Shown one piece after another: positions 55,701-64,000 of a stretch of 64,000 bases of DNA. Within the stretch, counting starts at the first letter, position 1, and each line of letters begins with the position of its first letter. The notes beneath the pieces are model-generated. The model was not told where the DNA came from and searched no databases. It worked only from the letters and a program-made list of their open reading frames with translations. The stretch covers positions 124,001 through 188,000 of the forward strand of contig CDMY01000047.1 in the NCBI GenBank assembly GCA_001179505.1. Reading direction: 5' to 3'. Source of the stretch: Vitrella brassicaformis CCMP3155. Lineage: Eukaryota; Protista; Chromerida. The translations under genes were made by a program, and so were the position numbers.

Positions 55701-56991
55701 GGCAGCTGACCGATCTGGCCAGCGAGCAGCTGCCCCAGCACCTCTCGCCCATCAACCCTTTGGCACTGCCCCTGTGCGACAACGAGACGGTGCAGCGCAA
55801 GATGCACCAGCTGGCCGAGAAGGACCGGCTCAGCAAGAGCCAGCGGTCGAGGACGGACGAGTCGCTCATTCAGGAGGCTGCGCAGATGGCGCCCGAGCCG
55901 GGCTGCAAATTCGTGTGGCTGTCCCGCGGGTGGATTGCCAACGTTGGCAACGAGCACCACGCCTTCTTCTCGATGGAGGAGTATGGAGGTCTAGCGGCAT
56001 CTCAGCAGGCCGCCGCCAAGTGGAGGCGCCACGTCATCAACCAGCAGCAGCGGCAGGAGGACGGCAACGACTCGGGCAGTGAGGAGGAGGAGGAGGAGGA
56101 GGAGGACTCTCAGGCCCCCGACCACCAGCCCGTGAAGCGGTCGTCCCGCCGCCCCCGTCGCCAGGTCTCGGCCAACATCAAGGACTATTCGTCCATCGCC
56201 GACGCCAATCGCGGTGACAGACCAGCCAGGGGGGCCGACAAAGACGACCCACAGGTCCTCCAGCAGCAGGCGGCGAGCCTTCCGCCGGTGCCGGGGGTGT
56301 GGTGGAGCCACAACCGCGGGCCGGGGTTCGCCACCAACCGCGACGGGGAGTTGTTTGCGGTCAAGAGGTATGGCAGTGTTGTGGAGGCGTACCGTGCGGC
56401 GGTCGCATGCGTCAAGAGGATCGACGTGGCAGAGGTCCAGATACCCGGCCAGGAGGACAAACAAGGTCGGCGGGNNNNNNNNNNNNNNNNNNNNNNNNNN
56501 NNNNNNNNNNNNNNNNNNNNNNNNNNNNNNNNNNNNNNNNNNNNNNNNNNNNNNNNNNNNNNNNNNNNNNNNNNNNNNNNNNNNNNNNNNNNNNNNNNNN
56601 NNNNNNNNNNNNNNNNNNNNNNNNNNNNNNNNNNNNNNNNNNNNNNNNNNNNNNNNNNNNNNNNNNNNNNNNNNNNNNNNNNNNNNNNNNNNNNNNNNNN
56701 NNNNNNNNNNNNNNNNNNNNNNNNNNNNNNNNNNNNNNNNNNNNNNNNNNNNNNNNNNNNNNNNNNNNNNNNNNGGGGAAGGGGGAGAGAGAGAGGAGGA
56801 ATGGATAGCTGATCGTTTGTTGTGTGTTGTGTGTTGCCCGTCTCTTCTCAGCGGCCAAGGATGAGGGGGAGAGGGAGGATTCTGTGCCGCAAAGCGCCTC
56901 AGGACGCAATGAGCGCACCACCACAAAACGTAAGCCGCCAAACGCGACAAGGCAGCCAGCTGCAAAGGAAAGAGCCTCACTGTTGTGCTCT

Positions 56992-57022
<31 letters not shown>

Positions 57023-59021: not shown

Positions 59022-61136
59022 CGTAGCGGGCCTTTGCTGTGTGTGTTATGTGCGTGCGTGTGCGTGGCGTAGATTTGCCGGCCAGGCCAGTGCTGGGACG
59101 CTCTTGCTTGCGTCCATCCCATCCATCGACCCGACCATTGATTGGGATATCTTGCTGACAGACTTACTGGTGCCTGCAATGCCTGGCCATGTGTTCCTTG
59201 CTACTCACTCACCTCACTCATGCTCGAGTTCGTGTCGTGTTGTGGGAGGATGGAAACACTCATTGATTGGATTGGATTGGATGGCAGGCAACCCGAGTCG
59301 AGCTCCCGAGCAGAGCAGAGTTCGGTTTGTGATGTGCTGACTGACTGACTGACTGACCGGCACGTACCTATAGCATAGCTAGCTGTAGCTGTAGCGATAT
59401 GATACGATGGATAGTGAGGTTGCGATGGGATGCCATGCGATGACACACGCATCCATCGGCTGCGCAACGGCAAGTGGGCTGGGCGGCACAGCTCACCTCA
59501 CCCTGTGTGTGAATACGTGGAAGGAAGGTGTGCGTGTGTAGTGCTTGTGTGGGTGAGGGGGTGGGGGGTGTGGGGGTGGGGATTAGACACATGACTGACG
59601 CCAACCTGACTGATGAGGGAGGGAGGGAGGGAGGGGGTGTACAGACAAGATGGACACACAGAAAGAAAGAAAGAAAGAAGGAAAGACAGACAGACAGCTG
59701 CCTGGTCGAGAGACCGACCGGCCGGCCGGACCCACTGGCTCGCTTGTGTGTAGAAGACAGCAGCAGCAGCTGCTGCTGCTGCGTAGAAGGCGATGAACAT
59801 GCATGATGTGATGAACACACCAACAAACCGCCAAAACAGTCGGGACCGATCATCCTTTGTATTCACAACCGCAGGCAGCGGCCACAGCTCATACACACAC
59901 AACAACACAATCAATGCTCACAAAGGGCAGCCCTCGCGGCCGACTCTCGTGTCTCGTCTGTCTCCCACTTCTGGCCCGATGGCTCCCGCATCGATGACCC
60001 GCGTTGTCCTGCTGACGGGGCGGGCAGCCTCAAAGAGCCTTGACAAATCGTTGCCACAATCCAGAGCCAGAGAACACAATGTCTGAGTCTAATGGCTGGG
60101 CCGAGCATGTGTATGAGAAGAAGCGTATGTACTGCAAGTACTGCAAACACGACCAGGTGACGACTCAATATTGGTGTATGGGACCTCGGGTCCGGCCGCT
60201 GCCATTGATTTATTGAGTGCTCTCACGCCCATGAATGCCGTGTGTCTCGCCCGCCCCCTCATGAATGCAATGCACCCAATGCACCCACACAGGTCTGCCT
60301 GTCTGTCTGTCCGTCTGTCTGTGTGCCTGCCGACCGGTGAGCACCTCACACGCTTTTGTGGAGCGCACTTGACCGCTCGGCAGGCAGGCAGTCACACCCA
60401 ACGCAACGCAACGCAACGCAACGCAACGCACACATGAGTACGTGTCCACGGATGAAGGTCTACGTCGGTGTCTCTCGCAGCCAAATCAAATCGCTCAGCT
60501 CTGTCAGTGTAGATGACGTGTTCGCTGAGCGGTTCGTGAGGCCGAGAGAGAGAGAGAGAGAGAGACATGCAGCCCATGAACGAAGGAACAAGAACTCACG
60601 GCGATGTTCCTCAAATCACTCAGTCAAATCACTGGTGCACACACACACACAGAGGGCCGCGAAAGTAAGCGGCGCCTGTACGTCTTGTTGAAGTGCAGTG
60701 TGTGCGGGCGCCGCGCACCCCACACTCTCGACACGAAGGAAACAGCACATGGACAAATACACATGGGAAATCAATAATCGATACACGCTCGTCCTCGCTG
60801 CCTGCCAGTGCTGTCTGTCTGTCTGTGTGTCCTCGTGTGTCTGTCTGTCGGCGACCATGGGAGCAGCCAGCTTCACCGTTCACACAGGCGCCAGCCAACG
60901 AATTTTGTGTATGTATGTAGTGACATAGACAAATGAATCAATCGGCAGGTACAGTGAGAATGTACGTATGCAGTGAGTGAGACAAATGAATCAACACAAC
61001 GAACGAGAACTGACTGACACATCAACGAATGAATCGTCTGTCTGTGTGTATGTATGTGGGTACAGTGTGTGTGGCGGTTCGTTCGTGTGCATCCCCAATC
61101 CCAATCCCTCCCTCCCTCGATGGATGGACCGATTGA

Positions 61137-61845
61137 TCAGCACCAGCCACATGAACAGCAGCAGCCACAGCAGCCCCAGCACTGGTACTGCCACCGGCAG
61201 CCACAGCAGCCACACACCTGCTGCCACCCGCACCTGCATCTCGTAGACGCCTGCTCGTCGGCCGCGCCATCTGATAAGCCACACACACACACACAGACAG
61301 ACAGACAGACAGTATGGATGCTTGTGGGTCAGTCAGGTGAGGCAGGCCCTTCATCCGTACCGTCCGTAGCGGTCAGGTTGGCGGGTGTCTTCCAGAGAGT
61401 GTGCACGATGCCTTTGCTGACGTGGTAGTTGCGCTTCTCCATGCCCTCGATGTCGTCGCCCTTGACGACGCTGGCGAGGACCTCACTGGCCTCCTCGGTC
61501 GCCGGGTCCTGCGTCCACTTCACCTCGCCGAACTCCAACTCGAGCAGCGTCTTGAGGAGACGCTCGCCCTCCTCTCGGGTCATGTTGGCCGGGACTTCCA
61601 CTGTGCCGGCTGCAGTCACTGAACCGCCTGCAAAGGAGACAGGCCAAGCTTGTGCAAAACAGTGAGTGTATCAACCAACAGTCGTGTGTCCGCAAGCAAC
61701 TCAATGGCCATCGCGGGTGTGTGAGTGTGTGATGTGATGTATACGCACCGGCAGGCGACACGGGCGACAGCTGGCGCTTGAGGAGCTGGCAGTTGGCGAC
61801 GCCAACCAAGGCGACAAGAAGAAGCAGGCCCAGGACACGGGACAT
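61137..61845 (-). CDS. Secreted prepro-protein (about 165 aa) with a C-terminal 14-cysteine peptide
   Basis: Exons 61845-61749, 61627-61361 and 61270-61137, both introns GT-AG and phase 1. Signal peptide MSRVLGLLLLVALVGVANC, acidic pro-region, then R|CRCGWQQVCGCCGCRWQYQCWGCCGCCCSCGWC*. Confidence 0.75.
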
Positions 61846-62178
61846 CTTCGGTGGAGCGATAGTGGTAGTGCAAAGAGGAGGAGAGAGGGAGTTGAGTGAC
61901 GGAGGGCTGCGCTGCTTCGAGATAAGTCCGCGAGATGAAACGAAGGCAAGACGCGGTGGTAGACGAGACAGGCTGCCGGCCCGAAATCATGTTTGTTCTC
62001 CCTGCCGCTCTCCTGTGCGAAATCTCTCTGCGTTTCGGTGACAGGAACCCTAAGCCACGCACCGCGTCAGATGGATGTCTCCGGCTGGAAACACCTTAAT
62101 GCCCTATGGATACTAGTGTGTTGGGTCGTGGGGGAGCCTTGACTATCTCCCTAGGAGGGCTTCCTGTGAGACAATCCG

Positions 62179-62201
62179 AAACCCTAACCCTAAACCCTAA
62201 A
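62179..62201. promoter_or_regulatory. Short interstitial telomere-type repeat (telo-box-like) in a divergent promoter
   Basis: aaaccctaaccctaaaccctaaa at 62179-62201, plus aaccctaa at 62046-62053. The sequence is seen directly; a regulatory role is inference. Confidence 0.45.
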
Positions 62202-62319
62202 GGTTTCGACGAGCTTCTAGCGAGAGAATCTTCCACTTGCCTTTTTCCTCCTCTCTCCCTCCCCGGCCTTAACCGGAGCAGCGATCTGCCTGAGATCTGT
62301 GGTTTCGTGCTCTCTCGCC

Positions 62320-63473
62320 ATGAGAGTACTGCGAGCGACAACGTTTCCGTCTCTGCTGCTGGCGTGCTGTGCCTTCGGCCCTCGGTGTGTCAGCGGACAG
62401 AGGTGGGAGCCAGGACAGACGGCTCTCAAGTTCCGGAGTCAGTTTGGCAGCTCACAATTTGTGTTCGGTACGAAAGGCAATTAGGCAACAATAACGCATC
62501 TTGTCCTCGTCCTCACCAAGAGTGTCTTATGTGTATGTTGACAGACTTGGCTCGAATGAGTCCTGTCGACGCGGGCAAGGGCGGCGAACTGCGGAAAGCT
62601 GATGTGGGGTCAATGCCGTCCCTCGCCGGCAACGGCGTCTCGCAGGTCCTCTACAGGCTGTATCCCTGTGGCATGAACAGGTCAGAAACACACACACATA
62701 GACAGACGCACTCAATGAATGCTCGAGGCACACTGACTGACACGTATGGTTCTCTCTCTGTGTGTCATCCATCAGTGTGCAGATGCATCCCCGCGCCAGT
62801 GAGCTGTTCTACGTGATCAACGCGACGGAGCTGGTCGTCGGCTTTGTGGAGGAAAACGGTGGCCGCACCGTCGAGAACACCCTCAAGACGGGCCAGCTGT
62901 CCTTCGTGCCAAAAGGCCTCATGCACTGGCACTACAACGCCGGTAGGAGCGGCGCACCGGACCGACAGCCAAGCTAGATAGAATTCCTTTATGTGTTGGT
63001 TAATCGACCTTCTTCTGTGATCACTGTAGGATGCGAGGACGCTGTCTTTTTGTCGACATTTAATCACGAGGACCCCGGTGTGGTGACGATTGTCAACGCC
63101 TTGTTCGACATCAACGCGACGTCCCTGCAGGCGGCACTCAACGTCGACCGCGCGCTGGTCGCCGACCTCAAAACGAGTGTACCCCCGTCACCCGTCCCAG
63201 GCATCGCAGAGTGCCTCAGGAGATGCGGGCTGGAAGGTAGGCATTCCATTCAGCATTCAGCAGTCACTCTCACTCTCACCGTCCGCCGTGCAAGTGTGTG
63301 TGTCTGTGTGTGTGTGTCATATAGCTGTGGATCCGTGTGAGCTCAAGCGGTGCGGCAACCATGAGCGTTGCAGGGTCAACGACGAGGGCAAGGCGGTGTG
63401 CGAGTGCAGGGACCAATACGCGAGGGACGAAAACGGCGACTGCAGACACGTCGGGGGCTGGGGCGAGGGGTAG
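62320..63473 (+). CDS. Secreted spherulin/germin-like cupin with a C-terminal EGF-like domain
   Basis: Signal peptide, SQFVFDL, PCGMNSVQMHPRASE (germin box 1), FVPKGLMHWHYNAGCEDAVFLSTFNHEDPG (box 2), GIAECLRRCGL, then DPCELKRCGNHERCRVNDEGKAVCECRDQYARDENGDC (6-Cys EGF spacing). Confidence 0.88.
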
Positions 63474-64000
63474 ATATGATATGTATCGAGATACACACAC
63501 ACTATCCATCCATCCATCCAGCCATCCATCCATTGTGCAGTGCATCCTCTCACTGACTCAGTCACTCCTTCATCGTCGGCTGCCTATGTATAGGTGTCAC
63601 GTAGAGGGGTGTTAGGTAGGCTAGGGGGAGACAGACAGAGGGCGGCGGGACGGGACGGTACGGGAAAGGACAGCTGGACGCTTCTTTTTTACGTGTGTGC
63701 TGTATTGTGACATGGTCATGGGCCGTCCACCCAGCTCAGCCGCCTTCATACATACGTCCATCCATCCATCCATGGCCCTTCGTCTCTTATTTGTAGTGAG
63801 TGAATCGGTGTGTATCCTTTATCTATCGCTGTGTGTGTGTGTGTGTGTGTGTGAGTCACTGACACAACGAACGCGGGCAGGCAGGCAGGAAACCACGCCA
63901 CGCCCTCTGGCCTGGCCGCCTGGGTGGCGGCCGGCCGCGTGTGGACTGCCTGCCTGCCTGCCTGATTGTTTGCCGTTTACTGTTGGCCATCCATCCATCT

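Follow-up and report, generated by a model that had tools for sequence, protein, structure and literature searches.

What is made by a gene whose last 33 codons include 14 for cysteine, and does such a tail act while attached to a secreted protein, as a peptide cut free from it, or hardly at all? The question is raised by a locus on the minus strand (positions 61137 to 61845) of a 64,000-nucleotide stretch, called the window here, of contig CDMY01000047.1 from Vitrella brassicaformis CCMP3155, a free-living coral-reef alga and a relative of the apicomplexan parasites. The gene is real and is expressed. Judged from comparisons with its relatives, it encodes, on balance probably, a lineage-specific secreted protein in which a C-terminal disulfide hairpin would be the variable functional end, with the focal protein carrying a slippage-inflated, 14-Cys version of that hairpin.

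Structure and transcription of the gene

The focal gene has three exons on the minus strand, with a coding sequence of 498 nt that, spliced in silico, yields a protein of 165 amino acids (aa). A preliminary description of this DNA had proposed two phase-1 GT-AG introns, the second running from 61360 to 61271, and a product with a signal peptide, an acidic pro-region, two KR sites, and a 33-aa end containing 14 Cys. The coordinates, phases, and product were reproduced, all of the sequence statements were correct, and each of these parts is present in the spliced product. When intron 2 is kept in the reading, in silico translation ends in ...GPASPD followed by a stop codon.

Transcripts were represented by contigs of four public runs aligned to positions 60300 to 62700, a contig-level record from which rare intron-retaining forms could escape. 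Contigs from three studies (X1 record 4, X6 record 13, and X7 record 18) aligned in three pieces, the first ending at 61748, the second covering 61626-61361, and the third starting at 61270; within each contig the record positions follow directly on one another, and there are 0 mismatches. The splice across 61360/61271 was confirmed by these contigs, which join 61361 to 61270; no retained-intron contig was found, and positions 61272 to 61352 within intron 2 had zero contig depth in all four runs. The joint for intron 1 appeared in the table of joints as CT..AC read on the plus strand, equivalent to GT..AG on the minus. The joint for intron 2 was missing from that table because this intron contains a (TG)n/(CTGT)n repeat, and it is explicit in the table of aligned pieces. 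The focal transcript spanned ~62023/61978 to 60438. The intron at 62467 to 62543 of the neighboring plus-strand gene was spliced in all four runs, which are therefore supported as RNA. Short (CTGT)n and other low-complexity patches occur in the 3' untranslated region (UTR) of the focal gene, and unrelated contigs were drawn to them.

The signal peptide (MSRVLGLLLLVALVGVANC, followed by Q) has a basic n-region, a hydrophobic core of 14 residues, and small amino acids at -3/-1 and is likely cut before Q20. Residues 20 to 132 are acidic (pI 4.8; 19 D+E versus 12 K+R), and the protein contains KR pairs at residues 23-24 and 96-97. Exon 2 encodes the motifs KGDDI and HTLWK and N-glycosylation sequons (N-x-T) at N47 and N116. 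AlphaFold2 (AF2) modeled a helix over residues 2 to 24 (the signal helix), two further helices, and a hairpin over residues 96 to 112, with a predicted local distance difference test score (pLDDT) of 45 for the protein alone and 53 with a five-sequence family alignment. Three other sorting or anchoring signals were considered and rejected: a plastid bipartite leader, as the region beyond the signal peptide is acidic, and both C-terminal lipidation of the tail (palmitoylation or CaaX or CXC prenylation) and a glycosylphosphatidylinositol signal, as the signal peptide places the tail in the lumen and the tail, which includes Arg and Gln, is nowhere hydrophobic over a long stretch.

The gene had also been described as hidden, which it is not. 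The spliced product was identical in a database search to the 165-aa protein P0001 (CEL92131.1 / A0A0G4EA65) of V. brassicaformis CCMP3155, labeled "unnamed protein product / Uncharacterized protein," and the same model is found on MMETSP Transcript_28816, so that NCBI, UniProt, and MMETSP already held it. Gene models of the published Vitrella assembly drew on intron evidence from stranded RNA sequencing (PMC4501334). In the literature searched, neither these accessions nor comparable chromerid peptides were mentioned. The features of the locus are collected in Table 1.

Table 1. Features of the focal gene, in window coordinates
Feature	Positions	Strand	Content	Transcript support or remark
5' UTR	61846..62023	-		Extent of transcript contigs; ends 62023 (X1), 61978 (X6), 61975 (X7)
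Exon 1	61749..61845	-	ATG at 61845, signal peptide MSRVLGLLLLVALVGVANC, then QLLKRQLSPVSPA; phase-1 end	
Intron 1	61628..61748	-	121 nt, GT..AG, phase 1	121-nt joint in X1, X6, X7
Exon 2	61361..61627	-	Acidic central domain, residues 33-121	
Intron 2	61271..61360	-	90 nt, GT..AG, phase 1; 3' end (TG)n-GGCTTATCAG	
Exon 3	61137..61270	-	Linker DGAADEQASTR, 33-residue Cys-rich tail, stop codon 61139-61137	
Tail	61140..61238	-	33 residues, 14 Cys	Within exon 3
3' UTR	60438..61136	-	~700 nt	X6 and X7 contigs continuous from 61270 to 60438

Relatives of the gene and divergence of their tails

By sequence comparison, the focal gene is a member of a small family, with three to four members, in Vitrella and a Vitrella-like environmental organism. 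The three Cys-tailed members share one plan, consisting of a signal peptide, an acidic domain of ~100 aa, and a Cys/aromatic tail spread over three exons. Their phase-1 introns occupy the same positions, with the signal in exon 1, the acidic domain in exon 2, and the tail in exon 3. The paralog P0003 (CEL93010.1; 176 aa), on contig C130, matched the focal protein with E values of 4.7e-4 in the exhaustive phmmer search and 8e-12 in a pairwise full-length comparison; it has the leader MSRVLCLLLLLALAGVGHGQL, the motifs KGDNI and HTVWK, and the tail DCWPCDEVCYEEWLCAGAYCYYEWVCWCDC with 8 Cys. This gene has a head-to-head neighbor starting MFARVLGLLFLV...LRKLAPEG, an arrangement kept in the ENA contig L032.

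A third member, on contig C253, was uncovered by a genome search with P0003 and modeled as three exons; its introns are of phase 1 and lie as in the focal gene, an Asp codon is likewise split over intron 2, and the encoded protein ends in DELPVARPCGFVCRRWYCYFGCW, with 4 Cys. The exon 2/3 junction and tail of this member are present in a spliced JGI contig (P0005 / L033). At positions 211/212 of L033 (JGI 3300017148), genomic position 1366 is joined to 1508 inside the signal-peptide exon; this intron-1 junction is non-canonical and out of frame and may be an assembly or reverse-transcription artifact or an unproductive isoform, and the intron-2 junction is canonical. A distant fourth member, P0007 (272 aa; contig C500), has the central domain and, after a spliced intron, ends in DVPDPEQYYYD, with 0 Cys.

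Conservation across the family is highest in the signal peptide and lowest in the tail. The residues before the conserved QL are A-H-C and G-H-G in the paralogs and A-H-G in the ENA ortholog. The central domain is marked across the family by the motifs G-[DN]-D and HT[LV][WY]K, with G89, G94, Y100, H108, T109, and K112 invariant. Alignment of the tails, which have 14 (focal), 8 (C130), and 4 (C253) Cys, revealed a common core, C-x(3/5)-C-x4-C-x(3/5)-C-W. This core takes the form C135-x5-C141-x4-C146-x5-C152-W153 in the focal protein, likewise C-x5-C-x4-C-x5-C in the C130 paralog, and C-x3-C-x4-C-x3-C in the C253 paralog.

The ENA metagenome ERZ893784 contains an organism ~90% identical to Vitrella in DNA, and its contig L034 carries the ortholog of the C253 member. 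The two differ at 0 to 10% of sites over the 5' flank, exons 1 and 2, the introns, the linker, and the 3' UTR, and the proportions of nonsynonymous (pN) and synonymous (pS) differences in exon 2, which encodes the body, are 0.04 and 0.17. The 15-codon tails (CGFVCRRWYCYFGCW in C253 and CRLECGWFYCYFVCY in the ENA organism) keep all four Cys and their length, with 3 of the 11 other residues identical. At the DNA level, the tail differs at 17 of 45 nt (38%) versus 26 of 446 nt (6%) of flanking noncoding sequence (Fisher test, 8e-9). The local excess over the flanks in the C253 tail is roughly ten-fold, and the comparison points to a constrained Cys framework with free loops, which is the signature of Cys-framework effector peptides. 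The result comes from one ortholog pair, that of the C253 paralog, and the searches made found no ortholog of the focal gene. A conserved pro-region with a variable core, as the preliminary description had anticipated among relatives, is thus seen in C253 and its ENA ortholog (Cys fixed, tail hypervariable). In L032, a second contig of the same metagenome, the ortholog of the C130 member lacks the entire tail exon and some of exon 2; the ~350-bp deletion that takes out the tail exon made it unusable for tail comparison.

No relatives were found outside Vitrella and Vitrella-like environmental contigs by phmmer of 1.84 billion representative proteins and by contig searches. The exhaustive phmmer search returned two other proteins, P0002 and P0003, and the focal tail itself matched nothing. 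P0002 (5,680 aa) was rejected as a relative, its match consisting of a short SPATGEITIAGTTTVP repeat that aligns 13 times to a low-complexity stretch. No relative of the focal protein turned up among the JGI metagenome contigs scanned, and searches of the Vitrella genome with focal exon 2 and the tail recovered the gene itself only. Pfam gave no match at E ≤ 10 for the exons (exon 3 alone included) or the whole focal protein, and hmmscan of P0001, P0003, P0005, and P0007 against Pfam found no metallothionein, BRICHOS, or cathelicidin family at E ≤ 10. A PDB sequence search with the whole focal protein and with its tail gave no match. In the ESM Atlas there was no feature match, and all structure rows had template modeling (TM) scores of <0.5 on a model with a pLDDT of 0.42. 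Membership in an already characterized family such as the metallothioneins, which would have gone against the preliminary description, was not found in Pfam, the PDB, or the 1.84-billion-protein search.

About ten further Vitrella loci have leader exons resembling MSRVLGLLLL.AL.GVA.CQL, with 58 to 72% identity and E values of 1e-4 to 0.03 (C253:124129, C212:54457 and 57929, C698:113819, C227:647134, C644:17956, C277:106045, C553:294396, and C40:160855). These may represent a shared or duplicated type of signal-peptide exon in Vitrella. Other open frames ending in Cys/Trp-rich sequence were also seen (L046 at C182:160628, L060 at C275:548778, L062 at C283:106864, and L042 at C113:108492), with ends such as ...RPLCSSCRHCRCWWCWRFWRCWCE before a stop codon and CGWREWCGSFWCQYAAHCW. 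No family-type leader or body was found near these four, and they could be unrelated genes with Cys tails or frames that are open by chance in TG-rich DNA.

Possible functions of the cysteine-rich tail

A secreted protein with a hairpin at its variable end would work as follows. The protein is predicted, from signal-peptide features conserved across members, to enter the secretory pathway, and in that oxidizing environment the core of the tail would fold into a small disulfide-laddered beta-hairpin, the outer Cys presumably pairing with each other and the inner Cys likewise, as in two-disulfide hairpin peptides. The hairpin may be the fast-evolving "business end," contacting microbes, the wall, or partner cells outside, and the conserved acidic domain may serve as a carrier or chaperone. 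In the focal protein, the core is set among ten extra Cys, part of them derived from local duplication of TGC/TGT/GGC-rich DNA, and these could add disulfides within the molecule, cross-link separate molecules, or bind metal through their thiolates. With the family alignment, AF2 modeled residues 134 to 142 and 145 to 153 as a beta-hairpin, at low confidence.

The same layout could belong to a true prepropeptide, cut after Arg132 or elsewhere in the linker to release a free peptide of ~3.7 kDa, with up to seven disulfides, that acts in defense, as a toxin, or as a signal. We regard this as rather unlikely. The tail has its own exon, the signal peptide is best conserved and the tail is most variable with its Cys fixed, and an Arg immediately precedes the first tail Cys of the focal protein, all of which would suit such a peptide. 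The first tail Cys is preceded by STR in the focal protein, but by EQD and ARP in the paralogs. Alignment of the three members revealed no conserved basic cleavage site, and no furin- or Kex2-type dibasic site, at the boundary of body and tail, and K96-R97 is variable, aligning with KK and EK. The cleavage at a basic site before the tail that had been proposed from the focal sequence was accordingly not upheld at the family level. A basic pair directly after the signal peptide is kept (KR, RK, and RK) and is distant from the tail. A peptide could nevertheless be set free, as elastase cuts cathelicidins at non-basic sites (PMC4410394). For the family, a precursor-like architecture is supported by comparison of the gene models: the layout is transcribed and is shared by two paralogs with the same intron positions and phases. 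To that extent the earlier precursor interpretation stands, though its cleavage site is not conserved.

Likeness to known precursors bears on the same point and on the proposed hairpin fold. The nearest analogs are precursors with a conserved carrier domain followed by a C-terminal disulfide hairpin, and any likeness would be convergent. Capitellacin forms the C-terminal 20 residues of a precursor with a signal peptide, a BRICHOS domain, and a putative Lys-Arg cleavage site; its Cys lie at positions 5, 9, 14, and 18, with Trp at position 19 and disulfides 5-18 and 9-14 (PMC7761999). It was the best PDB match of the C253 tail, with 9 of 17 residues identical (RVCIRVCRNGVCYRRCW in capitellacin versus RPCGFVCRRWYCYFGCW in C253) and the same framework, C-x3-C-x4-C-x3-C-W, but the match is non-significant (E 1.1). 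Precursors of BRICHOS-type antimicrobial peptides of polychaetes (capitellacin, arenicins, and alvinellacin) consist, like the Vitrella family, of a signal peptide, a carrier of ~100 aa, and a short C-terminal Cys-stabilized peptide. They differ in that P0001, P0003, P0005, and P0007 have no BRICHOS domain, no Lys-Arg precedes the Vitrella tails, and the focal central domain has 0 Cys. The BRICHOS-type peptides are also cationic and from animals, whereas the Vitrella tails, from an alveolate alga, are not consistently cationic and range from strongly acidic to weakly basic (charge of about -7 in C130, about 0 in the ENA ortholog of C253, and +2 in the focal protein), and the focal tail has 33 aa, 14 Cys, and x5 loops.

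Protegrins, which are variable and have two disulfides, are likewise carried at the C-terminus of precursors that contain a cathelin domain and have a conserved prepro part (PMC4410394). Cathelicidins such as these share with the Vitrella family a conserved prepro part followed by a highly variable C-terminal Cys peptide, but the Vitrella proteins have no cathelin match in Pfam, the four conserved Cys are missing from the focal prodomain, and the taxa are unrelated. Conotoxin precursors have three parts encoded by three exons, with the signal most conserved and the mature region hypervariable, its Cys fixed and its substitution rate elevated. The three Vitrella paralogs have an architecture of this type, with signal, pro-region, and Cys tail on separate exons; they differ from conotoxins in the long "pro" part (~113 aa), which has its own motifs and predicted structure, in having no conserved basic site, and in coming from a chromerid alga rather than a venom gland. 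No sequence similarity of the focal protein to conotoxins was found by phmmer against the 1.84 billion representatives, and the focal framework, C-C-C-CC-C-C-CC-CCC-C-C, matches none known to us.

The DNA of the tail itself raises a different possibility. The C-terminal 33 residues (CRCGWQQVCGCCGCRWQYQCWGCCGCCCSCGWC) contain 14 Cys (42%), 6 Gly, 4 Trp, 4 Gln, and 1 Tyr, and the Cys codons are mixed (9 TGC and 5 TGT). None of 100,000 mononucleotide shuffles of the 99-nt tail reached 14 Cys, the maximum being 9. This null is weak because DNA coding for CCGCCC is common in the genome (160 occurrences versus 5 for a reversed control); stronger arguments than the shuffles come from the tails of the paralogs and from the splicing, in frame, to an exon that encodes a signal peptide. 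Most of the CCGCCC sites are plain CTG/GCT repeats that are probably not translated as Cys. When the whole genome was searched with DNA patterns for CCGCCC and two Cys frameworks, any usable signal was drowned by CTG/TG low-complexity DNA. Tandem Repeats Finder detected degenerate period-9/18 arrays over 61134 to 61214 (63% matches), three partial copies of a 23-nt unit lie in the tail DNA, and all three reading frames are open across it. A clean three-unit repeat was rejected, as the in-frame self-similarity at 33 to 36 nt (0.57) was equaled by 51% of codon shuffles. The repeats and the abundance of CCGCCC-coding DNA indicate that a Cys-rich frame comes cheaply in this genome and that some of the extra focal Cys arose by local duplication.

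It is conceivable, then, that the focal tail is a by-product of slippage, in which an inherited 4-Cys tail was enlarged by in-frame growth of a TGC/TGT/GGC microsatellite, the extra Cys having little function and the central domain doing the work, if anything does; we consider this quite improbable. The arrays, the partial 23-nt copies, the genomic excess of CCGCCC-coding DNA, and the three open frames all fit such an origin, as do P0007, which has no Cys tail, and the one ortholog (L032) without a tail exon. The repeat is degenerate, however, with TGC and TGT mixed and Trp, Gln, Arg, and Tyr codons in between, which makes it old and impure. The core C-x5-C-x4-C-x5-C-W is also in register with that of the C130 paralog, and the C253 tail retains every Cys despite heavy substitution.

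A Cys content this high is shared with metallothioneins, as are the 6 C-x-C, 4 CC, and 7 C-x-x-C motifs of the focal tail, and on these grounds the tail could be a secreted metal-binding (metallothionein-like) or redox thiol module that chelates Zn, Cu, or Cd or shuttles electrons, either extracellularly or within a secretory compartment. We hold this to be very improbable. Metallothioneins have few or no aromatic residues, are typically cytosolic, and have no signal peptide. The focal tail, by contrast, has 4 Trp and 1 Tyr in 33 residues and stands behind a conserved signal peptide leading to an oxidizing compartment, where thiols are normally present as disulfides; the tails of the paralogs have 4 and 8 Cys in hairpin-type spacing; and no metallothionein match was found in Pfam, the PDB, or the 1.84 billion proteins. 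Ultra-high-sulfur keratin-associated proteins, with >30% Cys, Gly spacers, and CCG/CGC slippage repeats, are thought to be intermolecular disulfide cross-linkers. They are intracellular, from animals, and repetitive throughout, whereas the focal Cys are confined to the 33-aa tail of a predicted secreted protein, and phmmer found no similarity of the focal protein to keratin-associated proteins or structural Cys-rich cross-linkers.

Several observations weigh against the favored reading of a secreted protein with a variable hairpin end. Hypervariability is known from the C253 paralog and not from the focal gene. Synonymous changes in the C253 tail are raised as well (6 of about 7.5 sites), so that gene conversion or local mutation, rather than positive selection, could explain the divergent patch. 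The loss of the tail exon in L032 indicates that members of the family are dispensable and turn over, and the spread of tail charge, from about -7 to +2, means that no single physicochemical mode is conserved. The ten extra focal Cys may have been gained recently and under weak selection, on low-complexity DNA of a common type. AF2 confidence in the modeled fold is poor (pLDDT 45 to 53). Finally, a scan of the spliced transcript for open reading frames revealed an out-of-frame upstream ATG at 61990 (minus strand), opening a 128-codon upstream frame that overlaps the main start at 61845; this ATG, found in some transcript contigs, could depress translation of the main frame. It lies inside the X1 contig, whereas the X6 and X7 contigs begin downstream of it, and the true transcription start therefore matters.

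Defense and venom systems of animals, plants, and fungi are marked by gene-encoded peptides that have a Cys framework, a conserved prepro part, and a hypervariable mature region; to our knowledge, such peptides are essentially undescribed in alveolate algae. A bolder proposal, which we find doubtful, is that Vitrella independently evolved secreted precursors with fast-diversifying C-terminal hairpin peptides that are released onto reef bacteria or cells, the focal peptide being a 14-Cys knot with a new framework and the whole a protist counterpart of the cathelicidin, BRICHOS, and conotoxin systems. If true, it would offer a way into the dealings of a coral-associated alga with the microbes around it, as well as a small disulfide scaffold of a new kind. 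Should the tail prove to be a cross-linker or a slippage product, the gene would count as one more lineage-specific secreted orphan. What has been gained is a gene model that is now confirmed, a family defined at three to four members, and, in the hypervariability of one tail, a clear signature by which the hypothesis can be tested.

Surroundings in the window

The divergent neighbor on the plus strand occupies 62207 to 64000, has a GT..AG intron at 62467 to 62543, and runs past the end of the window. Downstream in this gene, a frame at 63090 to 63473 has an EGF-like Cys pattern (CELKRCGNHERCRVNDEGKAVCECRDQYARDENGDC). Farther away, at 56400 to 56999, the GC fraction falls to 0.16 to 0.32 amid DNA of 55 to 68% GC. 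The 5' ends of the two divergent genes are separated by a gap of ~185 bp that contains an interstitial telomere-type repeat, (TTTAGGG)2-3, on the minus strand at 62179 to 62201. No other site of this type occurs in the 64-kb window, where chance would give 0, and the repeat may act as a telo-box-like element within a bidirectional promoter.

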